A model generated the notes under the pieces. It made no database searches, was not told where the DNA came from, and saw only the letters and a program-made list of their open reading frames with translations. The translations under genes and the position numbers were made by a program. A stretch of 63,692 nucleotides of DNA, filler included, from Reticulomyxa filosa (lineage: Eukaryota; Protista; Foraminifera): assembly GCA_000512085.1 (NCBI GenBank). It is 14 parts of 14 records of this genome, joined end to end, with 100 filler letters (N's around TTAATTAATTAA, not from the genome) between each part and the next. Parts side by side here need not be neighbours in the genome. Positions count along the whole stretch, not along the records: positions 22,694 to 34,436 come from ASPP01009147.1; 13 more parts are not named here. One strand, 5' to 3'. Below are positions 10,040 through 34,320 of this stretch, piece after piece. Every line of letters begins with the position of its first letter. The stretch's first letter is position 1.

Positions 10040-13000
10040 AAATTATGGCTGTGCTCAACAAACACAAAGAATTGATAACACCAAGTTTTAAAGCAAATAA
10101 ATTTCATTGCTTTGGCCTACTCGTGAGGCAATGATGCAAATTAATTGTTTTAGATCATCCAACAAAATAAGAAGTTGGACAAAGTACTCTTTCATTTCAC
10201 GCCAATTGCAATCAAATGTTGCATTGGGAAAAAAAACATCTTTGCTGGAACATTGACGTCCTGTTTATTATTTCAAGTTGCTATCTTGCGTGAATTTATG
10301 CGAAAAAAAAGATAGTGTAACTTGTCGCAATTGATCTACTGGAAACGATTGAACAGAAAAACGATATCGATTAAGATTGTAAATGCCGGGGGCATCAAAT
10401 ACTGCTTGCAGTTCAATATTTATATATCCCCCTGGATAAAGATGTTCATGTTGAAAAGAAGTATTTCCAAACCAATGATAACGCGAACGAATAGAAGGTT
10501 CTTTATGGGTTACAAACGTTCGTAAGCTGTTCATCATAATATTGTCACAAGAAGATTAAAAAGAGCAATTAAACGCAAAAGAGATGAATTATTCAGCTCA
10601 ACTTGTTGTCAAATTCTTCATTTTGTGCAAGTGTCTCAAACGTAAATGAAACGCACTCTTTTCTGGAAATATTCAAAACCATCAACTGGACATCACAAGA
10701 TACTTTTTCGTTCCTGTATCAAGTCATGAAGGAGACCAGAGATAGTTTTTAAATCGCAGTGGATAGAAAAACAACAAACAAGCCCACATCTCAGACCAAA
10801 ACTGAAGAAGCGGCTTTACACGTAACTTGGATGTCATTGGCAATGTTTTTGGGTATTTGATGGCCACTCGTAAAGGACAGCCAGTGTGGCCTTCAACTTG
10901 AGAAAACACAAAAGGTTCGTTCGAGAAATGGAATCCGTATCTTTTTTGCCGAAGAATTTTTGGCAAATGAGCCAAATCTTCATTAATTTTGACGTCCATC
11001 TGTTCTTTGGAAAATTGGTTGATCCTTTGAACGTCAGCATTGTCATCGTTTGAATGCCCTATTTTCCCGGCTGGCCTCAATGGAGGGGGTAATGTTATCA
11101 ACGGAGGCTGTCCAGTTGCAGTACTAGTGCTATTCGCTTCACCGTCACTGACCTTCGATGGCAAAGTTTCTGTCGTATCTGTGTATGGCTTTGAGGCCAT
11201 GTCCAGAGGATGATCTTCGAGAACATTATCGCCTTTATTATTGATGTTGGTGCTAACGCTGACAGTAGTAGTTTGACTCACCAATGGGGATTCTAGGCTG
11301 GAACTGCTCGACAAAGACTGCTGACTCGTCAAAGTGTCCAAATAGTTGGATATTCTTGGGGACTCAGTGATTTCAAATGCAATCACGATTTCTAATTCAT
11401 TATCGTGCCTTTGTGGTGTCCTTCCACAAGCTATTAGTCAATCAAATCGGCAAATTAAAAAAAAAAGACAAAAATGAACTAAAACAAAACTAAAAAAAAT
11501 TATCTGATTTAACAAAGTACAACACAGCATACCTTTGCTGATCTGTTGTATTCTTTCCAACCATCGCAGAAACTTTTTTTTGACAAACTCATGGACTATC
11601 CCTTTCGATGAGCCCAACACTTTTTTTACAACTTCATTTTCTTTTTCGTTTCCGTGCAATTTTGCTCGTTGCTGTGCTACCAGCGGGGTCAAGTGTGAAA
11701 AGGCAATCTCCTCCTCTTTTTGGACATCCTTTTTTTTTTTTAAAAAAAAAAAAAAAAAGGAGGAATGTACAAATAAATAAAATTAAAAAAACTCCTCTCC
11801 TTTCGGGAAAAAATAGAGTCAGACAGCAAAAAACGAAACAAAGTCTTGCAAGCTAATTGTGTACTCCTTATCCAACGTGAATGTCTGATGTTCGAAATCT
11901 GAGTCTTTTTCCACTGGCAAGAGTTTCAAGAAGACAACGGAGTTACTCAGACCTTTCACAGGTTTGAGTTTCCTATAAAACGAAGCCGTTAGAAAAAGAA
12001 TTATCTATATATATACAATATATATATATATATATATATATAAACACAGAGGTCAAAACTCATGTTCAATTAAGGTTTGTATACGCCAATGTGCAGCAAG
12101 ACAAGTAATATGTTTGATAACAATCCAAGGCGATTTTTCCGACTCGGACAAAGTGCGCAAGGCATTTCGCTTTTCTTCGTTCGCAACTTCGGAGTCGATG
12201 GCGTTGGAGAGAATGGATAAATAGCGATGGTGACGCACAAGAGCAAGAGATGAAGTTGACGCAGAAGCAGAATCGGAAAAGAGAAAAGTTTGCAACTGCT
12301 CATTGCCGGCTTCGTCGATGCCCCTGCGAGACGTGCCACCAGAGGATTCGTGTTCAAGTGTATCGAGCAAATCAAAGCCCGTCAAATCATTGGCTTTTCC
12401 AGGGAACTTGAGCACGTCATTGCAAATATTTTCAATCTCAACGCCCAATATATACTGTCCAACATCACCAAAGTGATTTCTGGTGAATAACGACATATTC
12501 AACAATGGCTCTACCAACAATTGACGTGACAAGCATAAGACACGATCTGGAGCCTGGTGCGCGTTGTATTGAGTCTTTTATTTATTTTATTATTATTATT
12601 ATTATTTGTTTGTTTGTTATTGTCGATAGTATCAATTGTTTAGTAAAAGTTTTCACATTTCACGAAACTTTCATCAAGTTTTGTGAATTTGAAGAATGTT
12701 CCAAAACGAACAACTAACTTGATGGGCATGATCATTTCCGGCAGTGAAGTGATGAAGGGTGTTATAACCAATAACGAGCTGCAATAAAAAGTCGCCGATC
12801 ATATCTCCTTGCAACCATAGTACCAAACAAGTCATTTCTCCGGGTTTCAGGATTTGATTCAGCGCAATAATCTCTTCTTCGTACGACTTGTTGTTTTTGT
12901 TTGCGTCGCTTCGACTGCTACTTGGGGTCTCACTTGTCATTGTTTCTTCCACCTTAATAGGGTCGAGTATTTTCACGTCGTCCAGCCATTTCATGATCAG

Positions 13001-14030
13001 GTCGTAACTATTGCCTGTCTCCTTGGAAAAGCCCGACAAACGCCGTATTTGCTCTCCGTTCAATGTGCTCACACACATCAATTGTGGCAGGTTTAATCGC
13101 AAGGCAATATTGCTTGCCGGAAGCGAGCCAGTGTTGCTTAGTCCAAAGATAACAGGAACGAGCTCTCCATGGTATATCGAGTGCGGAAACCCAAAGTCTT
13201 CGTGAATGTGGCAATGCACACATGCTTGTGGAGGCTTCATTTGGAATTTGAAATTTGGACTTCGATCCTCATCGTTTCTGGATAATTCCATTTCAATTGG
13301 TTTGTATGTGTGTGTGTGTGTTTAGCATTATCGTTATTGTTATTATTTATTATTTATTATTTATTATTTTTTTTATTTTCCCTTCTCCTCGTTTTTCCAA
13401 ACAATAAACGAAGTAATACATAATAACGTAACAAAAAGTGATGAATGGATTTGTGATCGGATTCAAAGTTGGCAACGGCCTTTGCACCTGCGCTTAAGAA
13501 AGCGTGAGGAGACACAGAGGACGTGGATTTGACAGCGATAAGCGCACGATCAAATCTGTGGAACCCTTGCATGCAATTGAACACTTGCCAACGGATGCCA
13601 ACGATTTCCATTTCCAACCCATCCATTGCTGCGTGTTGAACGGACACACTTAATGATACCTTAAATAACCATAGTTGTTTTGTTTTGCATTTGCTTGTAC
13701 ATTATTTCTCTCTTTTTGCACATATACATATGTACATGCATCTTATTTCTTTTTCCCCTCCCTTCTCTCTCTCTCTCTCCCCTGTCAATGTACTACAATC
13801 GAAATGAATAAAAAAATAACTGGTTTGCTTTCTTCAGGCTGCAGCGTTAAGAACACAGGGTTGTAAGCAAATAGATCGTCATAACCCAACAGCATGCGAT
13901 CATTGTTGCTCGACAATGAGTTCTTCACGACACAATGCAAACACAAATGGTTTACAATCAATTCTCGTTTCAGAGGGTTGGTCACTTGTACGTTTACAGT
14001 CACTTTTTCTAAATTCGTGTTGTTTTGTAT
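10040..14030 (-). CDS. TRAPP complex subunit TRAPPC8/Trs85-like, C-terminal part; multi-exon, 5' truncated by contig end
   Basis: VQVTNPL..LIVNHLCL, LTLQPEESKP, EIVGIRWQV, PHSIYHGELVPV..LSNTG, LVEPLLNMS..QYILGVEIEN and YHWFGNTS..IELQAVFDAPGIYNLNRY resemble Trs85 Ig-like repeats. Boundaries are approximate. Confidence 0.65.
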
Positions 14031-14105
14031 GTACAAAGACATGTGATAACAAATTAAAAGTAAAAAAAAAAAAAAAAAAAGCATAATTAAAAAGCCACTT
14101 CAAAC

Positions 14106-14205
14106 NNNNNNNNNNNNNNNNNNNNNNNNNNNNNNNNNNNNNNNNNNNNTTAATTAATTAANNNNNNNNNNNNNNNNNNNNNNNNNNNNNNNNNNNNNNN
14201 NNNNN
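14106..14205. other. Artificial contig-joining spacer (44N-TTAATTAATTAA-44N); first of 13
   Basis: Identical 100-bp spacers also start at 19051, 22594, 34437, 37768, 39537, 42553, 49187, 51384, 52855, 55662, 60902 and 62374. The core contains stops in all six frames. Confidence 0.98.
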
Positions 14206-14929
14206 TTTCAAATTGAAATGTGCAATTATCCTCATCATATTCAATGGATAATCCCACGTTATTACAAAATAATACCATTTCATTCTTAATTTTATTTGTT
14301 GTAATCGTTTGTAATCCATTTGCTGCCTTTGATACAAAACAATGATATCCAATTGAATCATGTGTTGGCAGAGTGTCATGTTTGACAAATTGAAATGTTA
14401 TCAAATTAAATACGTCAAGATTTTTTGGATAATAAGAGATAAATAACAAATGATTATTGCTTCCTCCAATCACTGCACGCATCCCAATGTAAATATCTTC
14501 ATCTCTTCCAATTGAAATTGATTCATTTGCATTGTTTGTGAAAGGATACCATTTATTGCAATGTATTGCAATGTCATCTTGTTCATCCTCCCAAACGCTT
14601 CTATATCTCATCATTAATGTATGCTTATGTAATCCGCCAAACGATAACAACACGATTTCTCTTGATTTTTCGTTGTCCACACGCTTTACCACACTGTGCC
14701 CGCGTAATCGAACGTCATTCGGATAAGAACAGATACGCTTGTATTGATCTTTGCTAATATCGTACGAATAGCAGTCGTTATTTTCATAACCTCCGCAAAT
14801 TATTATTTCGTTTTTGTGGACTATACATTGGATACAAGAAAGTGGAACAGGTAAAGAGGCCAGTTTTTTAAAGGGGAGTGAAAGAGCTGTAATTGGAGGC
14901 TGTTCTAGGTTGGCATTAATTGTATCCAT
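14206..14929 (-). CDS. Kelch-repeat beta-propeller protein of a lineage-expanded family (3' truncated)
   Basis: LPVPL..QCIVHKNEIIICGG..CYSY, LLSFGG..KHTLMMRYRSVW, RAVIGGSNNHLLFI, YHCFV. Confidence 0.8.
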
Positions 14930-15614
14930 TTTATTGGATAAGCCTTGCGAACTTTGTAGCAGTGCTCAAAAACGCTACTAAATACAATTAATAGTGAGAT
15001 TTTTTGCTCTGGAAGTGCTGAACTTTAGGGAGAGGAAAACAACGCTGTGTGTGCTAAACAGAAACACGTTGCCCGTACAATAGAAAAAAAATACTGTGTC
15101 GCTATCGTTAACAACTTTTTAGTTTTTTTATTCAATCATAATCAACATATTTGTTGTTATTCATGATTTAACATAGACAACTTATTACTGTTTGACAAGT
15201 TTTGCATTGATATATTTTGTTAGTTTAATGTTAATTTAACTTCCAATAATAATTTCATTTAAAATTGAAATTATATTTTCAGAAAGTGGCCAGTAACACT
15301 GTACAAAATTTTTTTACTTTTTGTTTTCAACATTGAAATTGTTAATTAGGATCTTAACTATATAGAATTCTGCAGATTCAATGCTCCATAGCATTTGAGG
15401 CTATTAACAATCTCTTATATCAACTGAACAACTAAACATGTGGTGCTTGACATTCTTTGTAAACTGTTTATCAAATGTTTTTGTGGAGTTCGTTTTGTCT
15501 AGGTCTGCACACTCAGTTTTGAGACTAGTCACTCAACTGAACTTTTTTGGCAAGTTCGAAGAGATTGATCAGGGAGCAATAATATTTTTATAGAATACAA
15601 GTTGTTGAAAGCAA

Positions 15615-22693: not shown

Positions 22694-23256
22694 AAAAAAA
22701 AAAAGAGATATTCGACGAATCAAAAAAATAGTGGCCGGCGTGGATGACGCACTTATAATAGACGCACGTTCTCCGGAACGGTTTTCGGGGCAAATTAAAG
22801 AGGCAAATCAGGCGTTGCGAAGTGGCCATATTCCAGGTAGCGTGTCGCTATACTATCAATTGCTGTTGGACGACAGTCGACAGTGCTACCGCTCTCTGCA
22901 GGAACTCAAGTCGCTGTTCCTTTCCTTTGGGATTGACGTTCATAAACGACCTATTGTTACCACCTGCGGTAGTGGAGTCACGGCTGCTATTGTCTCATGT
23001 TTCGTCGCCTTTTTTTTTTTTTTTTTTGTGTGTTTGTTGGTAATGTGACATTGCATATACAACTCGTAAACATATATATGTATATACGTATATATTTATG
23101 TATACGTATATGTTAATAGTTGCTATTCATTTGATACAATGGGCAGACAGTAAAAAAACATCGCAGTTTTATCCGCCGTTGAGTTTATATAATGGCAGTT
23201 GGAATGAATGGGGCTCACGTGAAGACTGCCCTGTTGCTTGTGAAGTCAAAGAATAA
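22694..23256 (+). CDS. 3-mercaptopyruvate/thiosulfate sulfurtransferase (rhodanese), C-terminal domain, 5' truncated
   Basis: IIDARS..RF.G, RSGHIPGS, active-site loop TCGSGVTA, final exon LYNGSWNEW. Confidence 0.9.
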
Positions 23257-23788: not shown

Positions 23789-25886
23789 TCAAACTCCAAC
23801 CAATACTTCCACCTTTGTTTTTGCTTGCAATGTTCGCTCGTCAGATGTTCCGAAAACTTGACTGAAGATTTGGTGCGCTTCTTTATAATATTCCAAAGCT
23901 TGTTGTTTTTCGGATTTTGATTCGAAGGCGAATCCCAGTTTCCAAATTAAATCAGCAACTCTTGTGTTTGTATCTCCGAATATCTCTTTGCTTGTTGTCA
24001 ATCCTTTTTTATAATATTCTATCGCTTTATCATATTGCTTACTCGCGTAGTACGAATTTCCCAAATTACTATATGAGCGAGCAATATTAATGTGTATTAA
24101 TCTGCTTTTATCTGTTTCATTATTTTTCAATACTATTTCGAGGCATTCAATCGCTTTGATATAGTATTCAATTGCTTTGTCAAGTAGTCCTTTCCTACGA
24201 TAAGAAACTCCTAAATCATTGTAAGAATTACCAACAAGAACGTGATAAGTTCCAAAATGTTTAATCTTATTTTTAACGCCTTTTCACAGAAATCAATTGT
24301 GTTATCATACTGCTTAATTTTGCTGTATGATTTTCCTAAATAATGATAGGATGTAGCAACGTCTTCGTGGTTTGTTCCAAAAAGATCTAATCTTATTTCC
24401 AACGCTTTGGTATGACATTTAATTGCGTCATCATATCGTCCAGTATTGTAGTTCAGCATTCCTAACTTATAATAAGATAAAGCAACATCCGAGTGATTTG
24501 TTCCAAAAATATTTAACCTTATTTGCAAAGACTTTTCATAATATTCTATGGCTTTGAGATATTCTCTTTTGTGAGAATATGATGTTCCTAAATTATCATA
24601 CGACAGTGCAACAAAAGAGTAGTTGCTCCCAAAAGTGTTCGATATAATTTCCAACGCATTTTCGTAAGAAAAGTAATAGCACACTGCCGCAATTAGGACT
24701 AAAATCGAAAATAGCAATTGAAAAGTCCAAGTTTTTTTTTTTCTTTGCATCAGTCATTTCTTATTTTCGCGACTTTCGGTGTCGTCTTCATAGATTGGTA
24801 ATTCATCTGATGCTTGAACCAAATAAATGTCATAAAGGACACTTGAAACAACTTGAATAATCTCTCTTCTCAAAGTTATATCATTAACATTTTTGATGGT
24901 TTTTTTGATGATAGAATCAAAAGCTTCATTACTATTCTTTTCAATGATTTGACAAAATACTTCGATGAAACAGCTTCCTTTTTTAACAATATCACTTTCA
25001 CTTCCTGCATTATCTAAACTTACTTTTTCTGGAATGTTTGCAAAAATTGTGATAACATCAATTTCGATATTGTTCCATAATGTCCTTTGTTCACATCTGG
25101 CCTTTGTTTGGTTTGGTTCTTTTTCTTCTTCTTCTCCTCTATACCCTATCTTTATAAACATTTTTGGTTTTCCTGCAAAATACTCTGCTGCTTTCATTAG
25201 ATCATGTTGGACGTCTTTAAAATCTTTTGCCTTTTCATCACTCGTAATTAACGTATATCCATTTATTTCGGAGCCTCCATGCCCACACCATACAAATATT
25301 AATGCATCATAACAACTCACTCTATTGTCATCTTTAAAATCGTTAACTAAACGTTCATTGTGATCCAAAAGAAAATTATCCAATTGCTCTGCAGTAAGCG
25401 TTTCAGTAGTTGGATCTTTTGGATCATACGTACTGAATACTTGATACTTGAGTTTTGATTCAAATAATCTTTGTAGCAATAAGAGATCTTGCTTAACACC
25501 TTCCAAATATGTGTGTTGTTCATATTTCGCTGCTCCAGTTAATAGTATTAATGGATTCTTTACTTCGTATGCTGATTGTTTTTTTTTTTCAATTTATTGC
25601 TACGACGTATTTTGGAGAATTTTGATAATGAAACAAGAAAGAGAACAAAACATGAGTGAAATTGTAAATTAAAAAATACGGGATGACTCTCAAATGCAGC
25701 AACTACATTTTCATCAGTTTGGACATTACGACCGCTTCCATCAGTAATTGTAATCGATACGTTGTTTTTTGGAGTGGATGAAATAACTTGAGTAATTTTT
25801 TGCTCCAGTTCTTTGAACGTCAATTCTGACAACATTATCATATGTGCTTTTGTACCGTCATTTACGTGCGCTTTGTAGGAAGACAT
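23789..25886 (-). CDS. PB1-like domain + caspase-like (peptidase C14 fold, catalytic Cys replaced) + 42-aa TPR repeats; frameshifted in the TPR region
   Basis: The N-terminus YKAHVND..TFKELEQKI..ITITDGSGRNVQTDENV is PB1-like. The caspase-like part has NPLILLTGAAKY..LEGVKQD, DALIFVWCGHG and GKPKMFIKIGYRG (compare KPKLFFIQACRG), and GSCFIEVF. The TPR units read EKSLQIRLNIFGTNHSDVALSY. Confidence 0.75.
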
Positions 25887-26965
25887 TTTGTTAAGATACT
25901 TTGTGTGGCGTTTTAAACGCAACAAAAGTCTTGTGCCACTCCAAAAAAAATTGTGGAGTGGAACACCCTTTACGCCAGTTACTCCAAATATTCTTTTTAG
26001 CGTATAATTGTCAATAACAATTTCAGCCAACTTTAATTAATCTAATCCGTTCAAGCAACACTTTCTTTTTTTCTTGCTCTGAAGAGGCTCCAATTTTTGT
26101 AAGTAAATTCTTTTGTTAATATAATTGTTATTCTCTACAAAAAAAAAACAAGTGATGCAACAGACAGTTTGATGTTAAACAAAGGTACATGAAATAATCC
26201 CTTATAAGAAGTGCTGGATTGTTGCATTAGTGGAATTTCATTTTGATGTGTATTTTCTTTTTTATTACAGTTGCAAAGAAACCTTCATCATTAAATCAAA
26301 ATTTTTTTGGACTACTTTGTAACCCATATCATCATTTTTTTAAATGCTTTCAAGATGTTCATGTGAAATCTTGTAAGAACTAGGGATTTACAACTTGTTA
26401 ATGTGTATCCCTCTCTTCTCTTGACTTTCTACCTAGAAGTGACACATGGTTTATATTTCATCGCTCTAAAATGTGTTGCTTTCTTGTTAAGTAAAGTAAG
26501 TTGGGTTGCAAAGGGGTCTTTTAACTTTTTTTAAAATTCAATTTGAACAGTGTTATTCAAGATGCAATCTCGTAATGCAACTTTTTTTTTCATCTTTTTT
26601 TCTTGAAATAATGAAAATATATAAAAGAACTAGTATCTATTTGTTTAGGAAAGGAAATTGCTGACAGTAAAAAGACCAAGACGGAACGGCTTGAGGTTAG
26701 CCATCCTTCCACTTTATTTCTTTGTATAATAGAAAATAAACAAACTATGCTTATACTTATCTGTTTGGTGGATCAAAAAGACAGCAGTCCGTTATGCCTA
26801 CCCTTTAGAAATGGGTAATGAGTGTAGCGGAAGATCGCTTGAAGAATTGTATATGCGCTTGCAAAATTGCAGTTAAGATTTCAACAACAGCTGTACATTG
26901 CTCATGTGAGCAGTGGAGATTGGTATAACTGTATGTTTGCAGACAATTTGAAGTGTAATGGAGGA

Positions 26966-29900
26966 ATGCAAGACATCAATCACAATCACAATGTCACAAA
27001 TGAAGGAAATCTGAAATACGTAAAGGAAATGAAAACATTGACGCGCTTATTTGGAGATTCAATTAATAAAGAAGAACTGCAGCAAAAAATAGAACATTAT
27101 AATGGAAATATTGAACTGGTGATCAAATATCTTGTGCAACAATCGCTTGAAACCGAGGTAAAAGTGACATATCTTATTCTCTAAGATTGATTACTTTGTT
27201 GTTTTGTCATATAAAAAAATAGAACAAGTTAGAAGCAGAGATTAAAACAAATGAATTGGAGGATACAGATAATGTAAACAAAAAAAAGTTATGTTTGTCA
27301 ATGGTGTATATTTTACCCTTTTTTTTTTGCTTGTTTGAACGAATAAATAGAAACAAGGACAAGAAAACAAAATGAATGAAATCAATGATAATAATAACAG
27401 TGTACAAAAAGAGATGCACAAAACAGAAATTGGAGAAACAAAACCAGGAATTAACTTACAAGGATATTGCACAAATGAAACTTGTCTAGCATCGAAAGCA
27501 CGATTGCCTGTTTGGATTAACATTGAATATGTTGATATTATATTTATTTCAGATAAGACATCTTTTTGTTGTCCTGATTGTAAAAAATCAACTGTTACGT
27601 CCATTGTAAAAGCAATGTTTTATAATTCTGAACATTCTATTTGTGCAAGTGGTGATTTAGTGGCTGTGGAAGATAACAACTATCAATGCTCATATTCGAT
27701 TAAACCTGGATTGTCTTACGAATTAAAAGCAAATAGAATAAAACAACATGCAAAGAGCATCGAAGATTTAAGAGAAAGGAGTGAAAATGCAATGAATAGC
27801 ATTGAAATTAAAAATTTAGTGACAGAGCTACAAAAATATGAGATTACAGTTGTGAGACCACCTAGTTTAAAAGGAAATGAAAGATTATTGGAAAAGATTC
27901 AATCAGATTATTGTGGTGACTTTAATCAAGCATTTGATATTGGAAGAGTTACTATTTTATGCGATAGTCCAACCAAATTACAAACAGCAGTAGCAGTAAT
28001 GAAAAAAGCAGAACAATTTAATTTAATTGTATCAGAAGATAGAAATTTCTTTGATGAACAGTCAAAGACACATCATCGAGTTCATAATATTAAATTGTAT
28101 GTTCCAAAACATGATGTATATATTGAAATGCAAGCAACATTAAAACAATTTACAACATTGGAAGGATATACTATAATCGAAAATCCAAAATTAAGTCATC
28201 TATTTTATGAATTGATTAGGTCATGGAGACCAAATAGTTTATCAGAAGAAGAATTAAAACAAGAAAGTAATGAAACATTAGCAAAAATTAATGATGTAAT
28301 TTGTGAATGGATTGATACAAAAGAAATTAAAAAAATATCCAATCGTTATAAACCACATTCCGAAATTCAAGTATTGAAACCGCCACAATTAAAAGAAATA
28401 AGCGAAGAACAAATTAATTCTAAAAAAGACACTTCATTAAAATTAACTCAATTTGTATACGATCAACTTTGTACATTCAATCCAAAACAAATGAAAGGAC
28501 AAGCTATTTATGTAATTTTATTTGAATTTTTTAAAAAATATATTATGGGCGAAATGAATCCGACAACTTGTGCTGATGTCGCGTCAATATTATGTGAATC
28601 AAAAAAACAAGAATTAGAAGAAGATACAGCCATGTTACAAGCTCTTGAAACATATATTCCATTGCAAGCAAATAATTATCCATGTAATGACGATAATGCC
28701 AATGAAAAAAATGATTCTTATGATTGTCATCAACATATACTTGATTTGTTAACAGAGAAAAAAGAAGAGAAAAAAAATGAACAACAAATAGTGATATTAC
28801 AAGGAAAATCAGGTTCTGGGAAAAGTCTATTTTGCCGTCATTTAGAGGAAACTCTATGGGAAGCATATGAAAATGATTTTACAGCATCTATTCCAGTTTA
28901 TATTTCATTACCAAAATGTTATAATGAATTAAATGAAAAACAAATTATTTCACAAGCTTTACAAATGAAGCAACTTAATAAAGAGATAGTTAATGTGATC
29001 CGTGAAAGTACTTCATTTGTATTTATTTTGGATGGATTTGATGAAATATTTGATAAATATAATAAAAATAAAAATAACGATAATGAAAAATATTTTTATA
29101 ATCGATTTAACTTAAATGAATGGAATGCAAAAATTATAATCAATTGTCGAAGTAATGTTTTAAGTGATGATGATATCAATCAAGTTTTAATTAGCTCAAA
29201 TAATTGGATGACATCAATGATATATTTATGGCCCTTTTCAAAAGAACAAATGAATGGATATATTGACAAATTTGTAAAAATGAACAAAAAAAATAAAATG
29301 AATGATAATTTAGATTGGACGACACAACAATATGAAGAAACATTACAAAGCTATCCGAATTTACATAAAATGATGGAAGAGCCATTTTTACTTCGGTTGA
29401 TATTAACTGTATTACCATCATTGATAAAACAACATCCAATCAAAACCGACATATCTAAATCACAAATTTATGAAGCATTTAATGAACAATGGATTGATAT
29501 TCATGTTAAAAATATTTCTAATAAATTATCAGAATTAAGAATGCAAACCAATTTTAAAAGAATTAAATCATCATTTCAACAATATTGTCAAAATTTAGGA
29601 TTTGAAATGTTTCTTCAAGGTAATACAATCGCAACAGAAAATTGTGATAATGATACAAATAATGAAATTTTGAGTAAATTAGATCCAACAATGGAAACAG
29701 AGATCAAAAATATTGATGAAAACATGCAAACGAAGGAAATGGATAAAAATGATGATTCGATTGTAAAAAAAAAATTTTGGAACAAATATTTTAGTAGTAA
29801 TAATATAACTAGACATGTGCCGAGAAGAAAGGAAGATGATAACAATCAAACTGTAAATGAAGATCTGGAAAAAAAAACAAATGAAATCAACATCTCTGGT

Positions 29901-32660
29901 GTAAAGACACAAGATGTTTGGGAAAAGTATTTCAATGCTGACAGTATTGCGAAATATATATTAAGAAGAATTGGTGATAATAAATATCAATTTTTACACA
30001 AATCTTGCCAAGAATATTATGCAGCACAAAAAATTATATTTGATATTATTTCATGGAAGCCCAATATTATTGGCATTGTTGACATTGATAATAAACGATT
30101 TCAACAACAATTTGAAACTCATGTTCAAAAATTATCTATTAATTGTAGGTTATTGAATGAAGAGTTAGGAATTATTCAATTTATTGCTGAAAGAATTCAC
30201 GAAATAAATCCAATATTTGTAAATTTAAAATCAAGGTTATTTCGAATCATTGAAGCATCAAAGAATAATGAAAATGTTAGTATTGCAGCAGCAAATGCAG
30301 TTACTATTCTTAATTCTGCAAATGTAAATATGCATTACAGAAATTGGGATAATATCAAAATACCCCATGCAATTTTAGATCGTGCATTTCTTGAAGGAAC
30401 CGATTTTACTAATGCCAACTTAGATCATGTTCGTTTTTATCAAGCTTTTTTAAGCAAGGTTAATTTTACAAATGCATCAATGAATCGAATTTATTTTGGA
30501 GAATATGCTTATTTGGAAGGACATTCGGATAATGTAATTGGAGTTCAATTTTCACCAGACGGATCAAAAATTTTATCTTATTCACGAGATAAAAGTATTA
30601 GAATATGGAATACCCAATCAGGAAAGCAACTCCATTTGTTGCAAGGACATTCTAATTGGATTAATTCGGCACAGTTTTCGCCTGATGGTTCTAAAATCGT
30701 GTCATGTTCAAGAGATAAAACAGTTCGGGTATGGGATGTACTATCAGGACAACAAATTCAAATCTTTGAACATTCAAAACAAGTAAATGCAGTACAGTTC
30801 TCACCTGACGGTCTTAAGATTGTATCAGGTTTAGATGATGATACTATTCCAATATGGGATGCATTATCAGGAAAACAGCTTCAATTATTAAATGGACATT
30901 TAGGAATTATTTCCGGTATACAATTTTCACCAGATGGCTCTAAACTTGTTTCATGTTCCAATGATAAGACCATTCATATATGGGACGTATTTTCTGGAAA
31001 GTCATTACAAATATTAAGAGGACATTTACGTACTATAAACGGAATACAATTTACGTCAGATGGATCAAAAGTTATATCATGTTCAATTGATAGAACTATT
31101 CGAATATGGGATGTATTTTCAGGACAGCAAATACAAGCATTTGAAGGACATTCAGATGCAATAAATGGAATACAGTTATCATCAGATAATTCGAAAATTT
31201 TATCATATTCAAATGATAAAACAATTCGAATATGGGATATATTATCTGGAAAACAAATTCAAATATTGGAAGGACATTCAGAAAAAATAACTTCAGCACG
31301 ATTTTCATTAGATAGTTCTAAAATTGTATCGGCTTCATCAGATAAAACAGTTCGAATATGGGATATATCATCTAAAAAACAACTTCAAGTATTAGAAGGG
31401 CATTTAGGTGGAGTATGTGGAATAGATTTTTTTCCAAAAGATCATAAAATTCTATCATGTTCAAATGATGGAACAATTCGAATATGGGATATGGCACTAG
31501 AAAGAAAAATTCAATTAATTGAAGAATATTTAGATGATGTAACTGATGTGCAATTTTCACCAGATGGCTCTAAAATTGTATCATGCTCACAAGATAAAAC
31601 AGTTCGATTATGGGATGTACGATCAGGAAATCAGATTTATGCATTCGAAGGTCATTCAGGTGGTGTTCGTGGAGTATTATTTTCATTAAATGGCTCTAAG
31701 ATTATATCATGTTCTTCTGATAATACAATTCGGATATGGGATGTATTATCTAATAAACAATTGCATGTTTTAGAAGGCCATTCTGATTATATAACAGCAA
31801 TTCAAATCTCATCAGATGACTCTAAAATTGTATCATGTTCAATAGATAATACAGTCCGAATATGGGATATATTATCAGGAAAACAACTTCAATTAAATAC
31901 ACATGCAGAAGGTGTAACTTGTGCACAATTTTTTCCAGATGGATCTAAAGTTGTATCTTGTTCTTATGATAAAACAATTCGAATATGGAATGTATTATCT
32001 GGAAGACAAATTTTAATTTTAGAAGGACATTTAAAATCTGTAAGTGGTATACAAATTTCACCAGATTGTTCTAAAGTTATATCATGGTCATGGGATAAGA
32101 CATTTCGACTATGGGATTTATCTTCCGGAAATCAACTTTTATCATTTGAAGATCCAGATTGGATAATTAAAGCATGTTTTTCTCCAGATGGAAAGAAAAT
32201 TATATCATGTTCATTAGATAAAATGATTCGATTATGGGATGTATCTTCTGGAAAACAACTTCAAGTGTTCGAAGGGCATTCTGCATACATAAGAGAAGCA
32301 CAATTTTTTTCAGACGGTTCAAAAATTATTTCATATGCAGACGATAAAACTATACGAATATGGGATATATTATCAGGAAAACAAATTCAATTATTAGAAG
32401 GACATAATAGATTTATTAATGGAATAAAAGTATCACCAGATGATTCAAAATTGATATCATGTTCAAATGATAAAACGATTCGATTATGGGGTAGTGGTAA
32501 CAATAAAATATTTGATGTAACAGAGAATAGTCTAATTAAATGTATTTGGAGAAGAGGCGTTCAAAGTGGTTTATCAATGAAATATAGTATTTGGAAGGAT
32601 GCAAAAGGTTTGACAGTTCAACAGAAATTACTTGTGGAACAACGTGGTGGGATATTTTAA
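26966..32660 (+). CDS. NLR/STAND protein: UBA/CUE-like + Cys-rich Zn module + RelA/SpoT-like nucleotidyltransferase + NACHT + pentapeptide repeats + 16 WD40 repeats
   Basis: Main 1762-aa ORF at 27372-32660, plus two upstream exons (26966-27157, 27223-~27273). Walker A GKSGSGKS at about 28803, Walker B FILDGFDE at about 29020, PFLL, WHD FLHKSCQEYYAA at about 29990, pentapeptide repeats at about 30350-30490, and 16 GH..FSPDG.KI.S.S.D.TIRIWD repeats at about 30510-32490. Confidence 0.92.
30510..32490 (+). repeat. 16 highly similar ~126-bp (42-aa) WD40 coding repeats
   Basis: Recurrent GAAGGACATT...CCAGATGG...CGAATATGGGAT units. Confidence 0.9.
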
Positions 32661-33372: not shown

Positions 33373-34320
33373 TTAAGACTCTTTGTCGTCCAGAGAAGAA
33401 GAAATAGGGGTAAGAGTAGTGGGAGAAGTGGAAACTTGTTGGAAGTTTTGAACAAAGTCGTTTCGCAACGTGTGGTTAGGAATGGTATTGACAATCCAAT
33501 TGAGGGCATCTTCCAAAGACTTCCAATCTAAGCACGACACTCCCATCAATCGCATTGGTCGATTGTGGCCAATATTTGCGTGTTGCTGTGCAGTATCCAA
33601 AGCCGAAGGGCTTTCTTTGCCTTTGCTTTTGTGTTTATTCACAGACGACACATCCGTTTTGTCTGAGCTCACATGTTCATTATTTTTATTTTGGATTTGG
33701 CTATCATTTTCTGTTGATTTGACCTCCGTGCCAGAGTCATCCATTTCCTTTGTCTTGACGTCACTCACAGCTTTGCTATCTGCATGTGCGTGCACATGTG
33801 CATGCGCGTGCGCACATGCATCCGGATTGGTGCCAGTAAGGCCATGAAAATGATTATTGCTAACGTCATTAGTTTGCTTGGTATTGGAAGAAGAGTCAAA
33901 AGCAGAAGCAGAAGCAGAAGGAGAAGGAGGAGGAGGAGGAAGAGGAAGAGAAGAGGGAGTACCATTGTGAATTGGACTTTTATAGCTGCGAAAGTAGCTA
34001 AACAAGAAATGGGTATTTATGTGAGGAGAAGAAATGTTCAAATATGGTGACAGCGTTTTCGATTTATCTTCCTCTTGCTCCTTCTTTTCCTCTTTTTCTT
34101 CCTCTTGTTTCCTCTCTTTGCCAGTGGTGTCATCGGCATGTGCATTCTCCTTGCAACAATCTTCAAATATGGCCGACATGTGTTCCACTTGAATAGCTTG
34201 CTTTAAGTCTTGTTTATTACAAAGAATCAACAAAGGAGCATATCGCAAGTCCCGATCATTTATTATGTGACGCAATTCTTTTTGTGCTTCCTCAAACCTT
34301 GCATATGTGTCCAAGTATTA
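33373..34320 (-). CDS. Arf/Arl small GTPase C-terminal half with a large low-complexity insertion (5' truncated)
   Basis: RFEEAQKEL..LRYAPLLILCNKQDL (G4), then about 200 aa of insert, then MRLMGVSCLDWKSLEDALNWI (G5 and terminal helix). Confidence 0.75.

Follow-up and report, generated by a model that had tools for sequence, protein, structure and literature searches.

Results

Organization of the gene and of the encoded protein

Analysis of the window, a stretch of 63,692 nucleotides (filler included) made up of 14 parts of the genome of the freshwater foraminiferan Reticulomyxa filosa (assembly GCA_000512085.1), indicated that contig ASPP01009147.1 carries a gene coding for a NOD-like receptor (NLR)-type protein with a RelA/SpoT-homologue (RSH) domain on its N-terminal side (Table 1). 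The long open reading frame (ORF) of this gene shows 100% identity to the last 1762 residues of P0002, an R. filosa GenBank protein of 1905 aa named "WD-40 repeat protein". The annotated introns of 19, 59 and 47 nt are all bordered by GT..AG, and translation of the four-exon join by script yielded exactly P0002. The first intron (26872-26890, GT..AG) is just 19 nt long, and the assignment of exon 1 and of the start codon is tentative. Homology searches were performed with single-exon sequences or with the database protein as queries, the exon join being used for the P0002 identity check alone. In the gene and the flank upstream of it the GC content was 25-32%, and it increased to 0.40 where the contig ends on the 3' side.

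The protein is an NLR-type STAND (signal transduction ATPase with numerous domains) protein composed, in this order, of a UBA-like module, a putative C4 zinc β-module, the RSH domain, a NACHT domain, pentapeptide repeats and 16 WD40 repeats. It thus has the tripartite layout of the NLRs, with the RSH domain in the place of the effector, followed by NACHT and by the WD40 region. An initial annotation of the window had proposed an N-terminal effector ahead of NACHT and WD40 propellers in a protist, with a Cys-rich module before the effector domain and NACHT after it. This arrangement was confirmed, and both flanking modules are real as judged from the AlphaFold2 (AF2) model and conserved Cys residues of the former and from the PF05729 match of the latter.

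The consensus of the UBA-like module is K-Y-x-x-E-M-K-x-L-x-R-L-x-G-D ... N-G-N-V-E-L-V-I, and its top profile match in the PDB, to the USP25 UBA-like domain, had an E of 0.11, so that the label is weak. The AF2 models end at ORF aa 345 and thus cover the start of the helical linker only; no Pfam family was found in the linker (aa 315-465), whose dN/dS (ratio of nonsynonymous to synonymous substitution rates) was 0.09-0.52. Sixteen [IVLF]-x-[ILV]-W-[DNG] motifs with a spacing of 41-42 aa were identified in the WD40 region, a number of repeats sufficient for two propellers, and the underlying DNA is a tandem array with a period of 126 bp, 13.3 copies and 67% matches (Tandem Repeats Finder). A search of the paralogue set against NCBIfam and a PADLOC search gave no meaningful match.

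Table 1. Features of the RSH-NACHT-WD40 gene on contig ASPP01009147.1 (window positions; residues in ORF numbering)
Feature	Window position	Strand	Residues	Evidence or remark
Contig ASPP01009147.1	22694-34436			11,743 bp
Upstream exons 1-3	26818-26871, 26891-27163, 27223-27303	+		GenBank annotation; contribute 143 N-terminal aa
UBA-like helical module, ~45 aa, exon 2	27023-27142	+		Kept in at least 20 paralogues
Long ORF, uninterrupted	27372-32660	+	1762 aa + stop	Translation; equals last exon (exon 4, start 27351)
All-beta Cys-rich module, putative C4 zinc site C33, C38, C67, C70	27444-27734	+	25-121	AF2 model and Cys conservation
RSH synthetase-fold domain, Tas1/Apk1-like type	27753-28313	+	128-314	Profile, sequence and fold matches
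Syn1-equivalent (L-K-G-N-E-R-L-L-E-K)	27870-27896	+	K167, R171, K175	40-41/41 paralogue copies, 19-20/20 bacterial relatives
Syn2-equivalent	27936-27947	+	D189-I-G-R192	D and R in 41/41 copies, 20/20 bacterial relatives
G-loop (Syn3) equivalent	28068-28085	+	T233-H234-H235-R236-V-H238	hhalign and MAFFT: H-H-R against bacterial G-Y-R
Syn4-equivalent	28125-28139	+	E252-M-Q254-A-T256	E and Q in 41/41 copies, 20/20 bacterial relatives
Helical linker between RSH core and NACHT	28314-28766	+	315-465	Start helical in AF2 models, with lower pLDDT
NACHT NTPase	28788-29276	+	473-635	PF05729, E 3.1e-11, 43.8 bits (gathering score 26.7)
NACHT Walker A, GKSGSGKS	28803-28826	+	478	Motif scan
NACHT Walker B, FILDGFDE	29022-29045	+	551	Motif scan
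Pentapeptide-repeat segment	30321-30497	+	984-1042	PF00805, E 8.6e-7, 28.9 bits (gathering score 20.2)
Sixteen WD40 repeats	30498-32546	+	1043-1725	Pfam WD40, E 1.6e-155, 16 stretches

Identification of the RSH domain by sequence and profile

The region of ORF aa ~128-314 is a genuine RSH synthetase-type domain with a Pol-beta-like fold. The initial annotation had placed an alarmone synthetase-type domain at 27780-28230, which corresponds to ORF aa 137-286 and lies inside the RSH fold, and the peptides that it quoted are all present in the translation of 27372-32660 (+). The window copy, trimmed to 246 aa (ORF aa 100-345), matched the Pfam family RelA_SpoT (PF04607) with E 0.0033 and 18.1 bits, below the gathering score of 27, the match extending from K68 to A156 of the trimmed domain and from position 4 to 89 of the 113 profile positions. 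PF04607 was matched (E<=1) by 40 of the 41 paralogue copies, with a best E of 4.3e-7, and a precomputed match to this family exists for the paralogue P0001.

Single-sequence phmmer search of the PDB gave Tas1 (6OX6) with E 0.17 at rank 2, behind an unrelated SET-domain chain (E 0.049), and the search with the paralogue profile placed Tas1 at the top with E 0.0054. The aligned block reads P-S-L-K-G-N-E-R-L-L-E-K-I-Q-S-D-Y-C-G-D...D-I-G-R-V-T-I in the window and A-P-I-K-S-R-E-R-A-M-Q-K-I-N-N-D-Y-K-G-D...D-L-A-R-N-T-I in Tas1.

An exhaustive phmmer search of 1.84 billion representatives yielded 87 matches at E<=1e-3, only part of which are labelled. The labelled close matches were all from R. filosa, and the distant ones (20-32% identity) were metagenomic or bacterial proteins that are themselves RelA_SpoT-positive. 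Many of these distant relatives bear the polymorphic-toxin delivery modules eCIS_core, VgrG/Phage_GPD or DUF4781, and their sources include metagenome-assembled genomes of Polyangiaceae, Myxococcota and Kofleriaceae. Alignment by hhalign of the foraminiferan family with 20 bacterial RSH toxin domains gave a probability of 99.6% and E 7.7e-24 over 166 columns. As far as sequence comparison goes, the nearest relatives outside R. filosa are toxin domains of the Tas1/Apk1-like type from bacterial extracellular contractile injection systems (eCIS) and type VI secretion systems (T6SS).

Two other matches require mention. P0080, retrieved in the exhaustive search with E 4e-23, was rejected as a false positive in which 25 weak repeat matches had been added up. 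The Guillardia theta protein P0122 (XP_005840511.1) showed two weak matches to the Syn1-Syn2 part, at residues ~449-516 and ~1151-1218 (E 3e-4 overall), and Pfam gave no support for the RSH-like stretches of this cryptophyte protein.

Predicted fold of the RSH domain

AF2 modelled the domain alone with a predicted local distance difference test score (pLDDT) of 83.4, and ORF aa 20-345 with a pLDDT of 87.9 and a predicted template modelling score of 0.81. The top 50 Foldseek matches in the PDB were all RSH enzymes, with Tas1 first (E 2.2e-7). VIA-align gave Tas1 a Z of 12.8 (166 residues, 3.1 Å), and an exhaustive VIA-align search, independent of Foldseek, gave it a Z of 13.9 (169 residues, 3.0 Å). 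The following matches were SAS2, SAS1, RelP, Rel, the exported Streptomyces synthetase (EAS) and CapRel, with Z of 10.8-13.1; over both searches the small alarmone synthetases reached Z 12-13, and the other Pol-beta-type nucleotidyltransferases did not exceed a Z of 8.8. The initial proposal of a RelA/SpoT-type nucleotidyltransferase thus agrees with AlphaFold, Foldseek and profile searches alike, all of which point to the RSH Pol-beta-like fold. Tas1 ranked first among the RSH proteins in phmmer and outright in the profile search, Foldseek and both VIA-align searches; its margin over SAS1 and SAS2 was smaller than 1 Z, so that the fold alone cannot tell them apart.

The structural neighbours found in the ESM Atlas were RSH clusters. 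Among the clusters that resemble the RSH domain in structure are hypothetical proteins of Nucleocytoviricota and fusions with Phage_Mu_F (phage minor-capsid) or Peptidase_S78_2; RSH-like toxin folds therefore ride viral particles too.

Conservation of the active site

Conservation was counted over 41 paralogue copies (mean column identity 79%) and 20 bacterial relatives. Profile and structure comparison bore out the ordered Syn1-Syn4 motifs that the initial annotation had read from the sequence, namely K167/R171/K175, D189..R192, H234-H235-R236 and E252-M-Q254, and the paralogue alignment showed that the catalytic D, E and Q and the Lys K167 of Syn1 are conserved in 41/41 copies. K167 is kept in 41/41 and R171 and K175 each in 40/41 copies, and the Syn1 block aligns within Tas1 residues 278-329. 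Residues K167, R171, K175, D189, G191, R192, T194, T233, H234, R236, H238, E252, M253, Q254 and T256 are either invariant or absent in one gapped copy only.

In the FaRel2 and RelP structures, basic residues hold the triphosphate of the donor ATP and an Asp holds Mg2+ (PMC11782079). By analogy to FaRel2 D90 (PMC11782079), D189 is predicted to be the Mg2+-binding catalytic Asp, and the residues assigned to donor-ATP binding and catalysis are intact. The vicinity of the G-loop is strongly basic (K232, H234, H235, R236, H238, K241), which weakly favours a nucleotide acceptor.

The β-module preceding the RSH domain

The β-module was modelled as all-beta with a pLDDT of 91-96. Its motifs C33-x4-C38 and C67-P-x-C70 are kept in 34-35 of 35 foraminiferan copies, including that of a non-NLR protein, P0062, and the four conserved Cys presumably form a C4 zinc site. 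Neither Pfam, structure search nor protein-atlas feature search gave a known family or a clear fold match for the module: the best structural matches were weak (Z 6.0 to the C-terminal β-domain of a fucosidase and to PpnP), and the feature search returned unnamed rotifer clusters only. In R. filosa proteins the β-module always accompanies the RSH domain. Since bacterial toxic small alarmone synthetases (toxSAS) come under the control of (pseudo-)zinc-finger domains that occlude the donor site (PMC11782079), it is an attractive hypothesis that the β-module controls the RSH domain.

Paralogue family and selection

At least 53 R. filosa proteins share the N-terminal region, 40 of which contain 41 full-length copies of the RSH domain. 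Selection was analysed with the window copy and four paralogue loci from the same assembly. Pairwise values for the RSH core (aa 128-290) were 0.055-0.31 for dN, 0.6-2.2 for dS and 0.04-0.28 for dN/dS. In most pairs the dN of the RSH core was the lowest among the N-terminal parts and below that of the start of NACHT; the exceptions were the pairs with locus L002 and one pair with locus L004, in which the dN of NACHT or of the linker was lower or equal. As estimated from these substitution rates, the RSH domain is under strong purifying selection among old duplicates.

Three members of the collection or their surroundings differ in organization. P0001 (RFI_08856) contains two tandem units of zinc β-module and RSH domain, at residues 20-345 and 402-727, ahead of one NACHT domain; its first copy has Asp at the Tyr/His position of the G-loop and may be degenerate. 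P0062 (ETO26992.1, 'vcbs repeat-containing protein', 1017 aa) carries the zinc β-module and RSH domain at its C-terminus (608-933) and has no NACHT. In its layout P0062 recalls the polymorphic toxins of bacteria, and this arrangement may be left over from the acquisition of the β-RSH unit. In locus L004 the RSH-NACHT-WD40 paralogue P0043 has as its neighbour, at 12538-15026 (-), a second NACHT protein of another kind, 1905 aa long and with HEAT/ARM-type repeats, which suggests that NLR genes cluster in R. filosa.

Neighbouring genes on the contig

A frame with a caspase-like domain (Peptidase_C14, E 7e-11) lies at 24208-25506 (-), head-to-head with the NLR gene. This frame has an in-frame stop at 24754-24756 followed by three TPR_12 (tetratricopeptide) repeats (E 5e-41), and it could represent a broken caspase-TPR gene, two genes, or a stop hidden by a small intron. 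A rhodanese-like ORF (E 7.8e-8) was identified at 22731-23048 (+), at the 5' end of the contig, and an ORF with a short match to the Arf family (E 2.7e-11, 45 residues) at 33373-34314 (-), in the GC-richer (0.40) 3' end.

Discussion

Relation to bacterial toxins and to other NLRs

Among RSH enzymes, Tas1/Apk1 of Pseudomonas aeruginosa (6OX6) matched the window domain best in sequence, and in fold it was the best match of all. Both share the block L-K-G-x-E-R-x-x-E-K-I-x-x-D-Y-x-G-D...D-x-x-R-x-[TS]-I, the E-x-Q motif and a small helical domain after the core. Modules of the eCIS_core or VgrG type are present in the closest relatives from metagenomes. The foraminiferan domain differs from Tas1 in its identity of about 15-25%, in the replacement of the G-loop G-Y by H-H and in the preceding C4 zinc β-module. 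It is also part of a eukaryotic NACHT-WD40 protein, while Tas1 is an effector that bacteria secrete and that is paired with an immunity protein. Lying inside a NACHT-WD40 protein, the foraminiferan domain is without the delivery module (VgrG, LXG, eCIS, signal peptide) and the cognate immunity protein or hydrolase of such toxins, and none of the genes identified along the contig was immunity-like. Apk1-like exported (p)ppApp synthetase toxins occur on effectors of T6SS, of the type VII and type III secretion systems and of eCIS. Apk1-like domains are known from numerous secretion systems of bacteria (PMC12691689), which is consistent with acquisition by horizontal transfer; the entry of a polymorphic-toxin domain from a bacterium into the innate-immune-like receptors of a protist is probable.

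RelA_SpoT-NACHT-WD40 proteins were catalogued as fungal NLRs by Dyrka et al. in 2014 (PMC4986451), and the novelty implied by the initial annotation was therefore overstated. Later surveys list RelA_SpoT as a canonical N-terminal domain in the NLRs of fungi, with 17 RelA_SpoT NLRs in the Sordariales surveyed, 14 of which have T-NACHT (bioRxiv 10.1101/2022.03.16.484565, 10.1101/2024.11.26.625400). The order of RelA_SpoT effector, NACHT and WD40 is the same in the fungal and the R. filosa proteins. On the contrary, the lineage (Rhizaria), the additional UBA-like, zinc β and pentapeptide parts and the family size set the latter apart, with at least 40 RSH-bearing paralogues in R. filosa alone against the 17 of all Sordariales surveyed. 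Since no fungal NLR was found among the labelled proteins of the 87 exhaustive phmmer matches, the RSH-NACHT fusion is probably independent of the fungal one. Searches of the available literature retrieved no report on the function of fungal RelA_SpoT NLRs and no paper linking Reticulomyxa with NACHT or with alarmone.

Two further systems invite comparison. The anti-phage protein CapRel(SJ46) (7ZTB, 9ERV), which is released upon invader detection (PMC11782079), resembles the R. filosa protein in that a single polypeptide joins an RSH toxin with a sensing or inhibitory part containing a (pseudo-)zinc-finger, and its fold matched the window domain with Z 10.7-11.3. CapRel senses directly by its C-terminal pseudo-zinc-finger domain and pyrophosphorylates tRNA, whereas sensing in R. 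filosa would use WD40 and NACHT; the zinc module of R. filosa is N-terminal, all-beta and unrelated in sequence to that of CapRel. The fungal HET-E/NWD allorecognition receptors share with the R. filosa proteins a NACHT domain followed by highly similar tandem WD40 repeats (the 126-bp array in our case), large paralogous families and a syncytial host. The effector differs, being HET in HET-E and RSH in R. filosa, and the pentapeptide segment is atypical of the fungal proteins.

Proposed action of the RSH-NLR proteins

We favour, as the probable interpretation, that the RSH domain is an active pyrophosphokinase effector triggered through the NLR. The WD40 propellers would bind a non-self or danger ligand, and oligomerisation driven by NACHT would gather the N-terminal RSH domains or relieve their inhibition. 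The RSH domains would then move pyrophosphate from ATP onto the 3'-OH of an acceptor, most likely an adenine or guanine nucleotide, with formation of (p)ppApp-like products and depletion of ATP; the tRNA 3' end would be a less likely acceptor. The outcome would be arrest or death of the affected part of the syncytial cell, in defence or in allorecognition; for the latter, recognition between fusing reticulopodial networks is no more than a plausible analogy to the fungi.

Several observations weigh against an active, NLR-triggered effector. The 18.1 bits of the window copy are below the PF04607 gathering score of 27; Pfam and NCBIfam searches with a 473-aa N-terminal fragment gave nothing useful and no Pfam match, and RelA_SpoT surfaced only with the trimmed 246-aa domain and the paralogues. 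The canonical arginine of the Syn1 RxK motif is absent; in the alignments it appears to be missing in Tas1 and the bacterial relatives as well. In the G-loop, H234 sits where the bacterial Gly is, and the Gly-Tyr pair of the RSH family was not found. The β3-β4 G-loop contributes a Tyr that stacks against the acceptor base and is called conserved in alarmone synthetases (PMC11782079). The initial annotation had noticed that this Tyr appears as His, which holds, with the correction that the aligned residue is the second His, H235: of the 41 copies, 37 have H at position 235, 3 have Y and 1 has D, and all 20 bacterial relatives have Y. A His at this position could mean reduced or redirected activity. 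A search of sequencing runs for the locus retrieved no RNA run; it returned two DNA-type runs (type guessed) from one "synthetic metagenome" study, each with 6% of the words. Finally, the immune function and the activation by oligomerisation are assumed from other NLRs.

Alternative explanations

The G-loop substitution, together with the low Pfam score and the Asp-bearing tandem copy of P0001, which leaves some copies possibly degenerate, would also fit a catalytically dead pseudoenzyme. Such an RSH domain would offer a surface for oligomerisation or for adaptors, or would be an integrated decoy baiting pathogen factors that target RSH-like proteins. We regard this as unlikely, for old paralogues, whose dS is saturated, have kept K167, R171, K175, D189, R192, E252 and Q254 without exception or almost so, which is hard to reconcile with a scaffold; moreover, His is able to stack on a base, and the Tyr is kept in three paralogues.

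An active domain could instead generate a signal, with a diffusible pyrophosphorylated nucleotide switching on a separate effector as in the cyclic-nucleotide defence systems. The fold and the catalytic residues suit any RSH synthetase, and the head-to-head caspase-like and TPR frame might, speculatively, be the downstream executioner. This explanation seems to us quite improbable: it is delivered toxins (eCIS, VgrG, Tas1), not signalling small alarmone synthetases, that stand closest to the domain, no Peptidase_C14 neighbour was present at the four paralogue loci examined, and no receptor is known.

Bacterial contamination or an assembly chimera, suggested by the frequency of NACHT-pentapeptide-WD40 architectures and Tas1-like domains in bacteria and by the bacterial origin of the domain's nearest outside relatives, is very unlikely as the source of the gene, because it has GT..AG introns and an upstream exon kept in at least 20 paralogues, and the paralogues, over 50 in number, are spread over separate R. 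filosa contigs, beside eukaryotic-type genes (clathrin light chain, POPDC); the GC content of 25-32% for gene and flanks and the Arf fragment on the same contig also speak against it.

Returning to the active pyrophosphokinase effector, the His in place of Tyr and the constant zinc β-module suggest an altered acceptor or a built-in control element. A more far-reaching proposal, which we advance as tentative, is that foraminifera independently captured a bacterial polymorphic-toxin domain of the Tas1/Apk1 type together with a dedicated C4 zinc β-module, then altered its acceptor site (Tyr to His) and multiplied it, so that it serves over 50 NACHT-WD40 receptors as an effector of death or dormancy, with a new acceptor specificity or a new pyrophosphorylated nucleotide, in defence or allorecognition.

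Significance

What is new in the R. filosa proteins is the Rhizaria lineage, the size of the family, the affinity to Tas1/Apk1-type toxins, the zinc β-module and the acceptor site with His for Tyr. It is well established that RSH alarmone-synthetase toxins serve bacteria as weapons in warfare and in defence against phages; to our knowledge, for no RSH domain linked to a eukaryotic NLR has an action been demonstrated. The R. filosa family provides a large and strongly constrained natural series for testing the action of such domains, with at least 40 intact copies, a minority that retains Tyr, one tandem-duplicated copy and one non-NLR protein with the β-RSH unit. It opens the question whether eukaryotic NLRs kill or arrest cells via ATP-consuming pyrophosphorylation of nucleotides or tRNA, and it extends the shared effector toolkit to Rhizaria. 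Should the RSH domain indeed be a captured and altered toxin domain that acts in defence or allorecognition, this giant syncytial cell would have arrived, by convergence, at a parallel to the heterokaryon incompatibility of fungi and to abortive infection of the CapRel type in bacteria.

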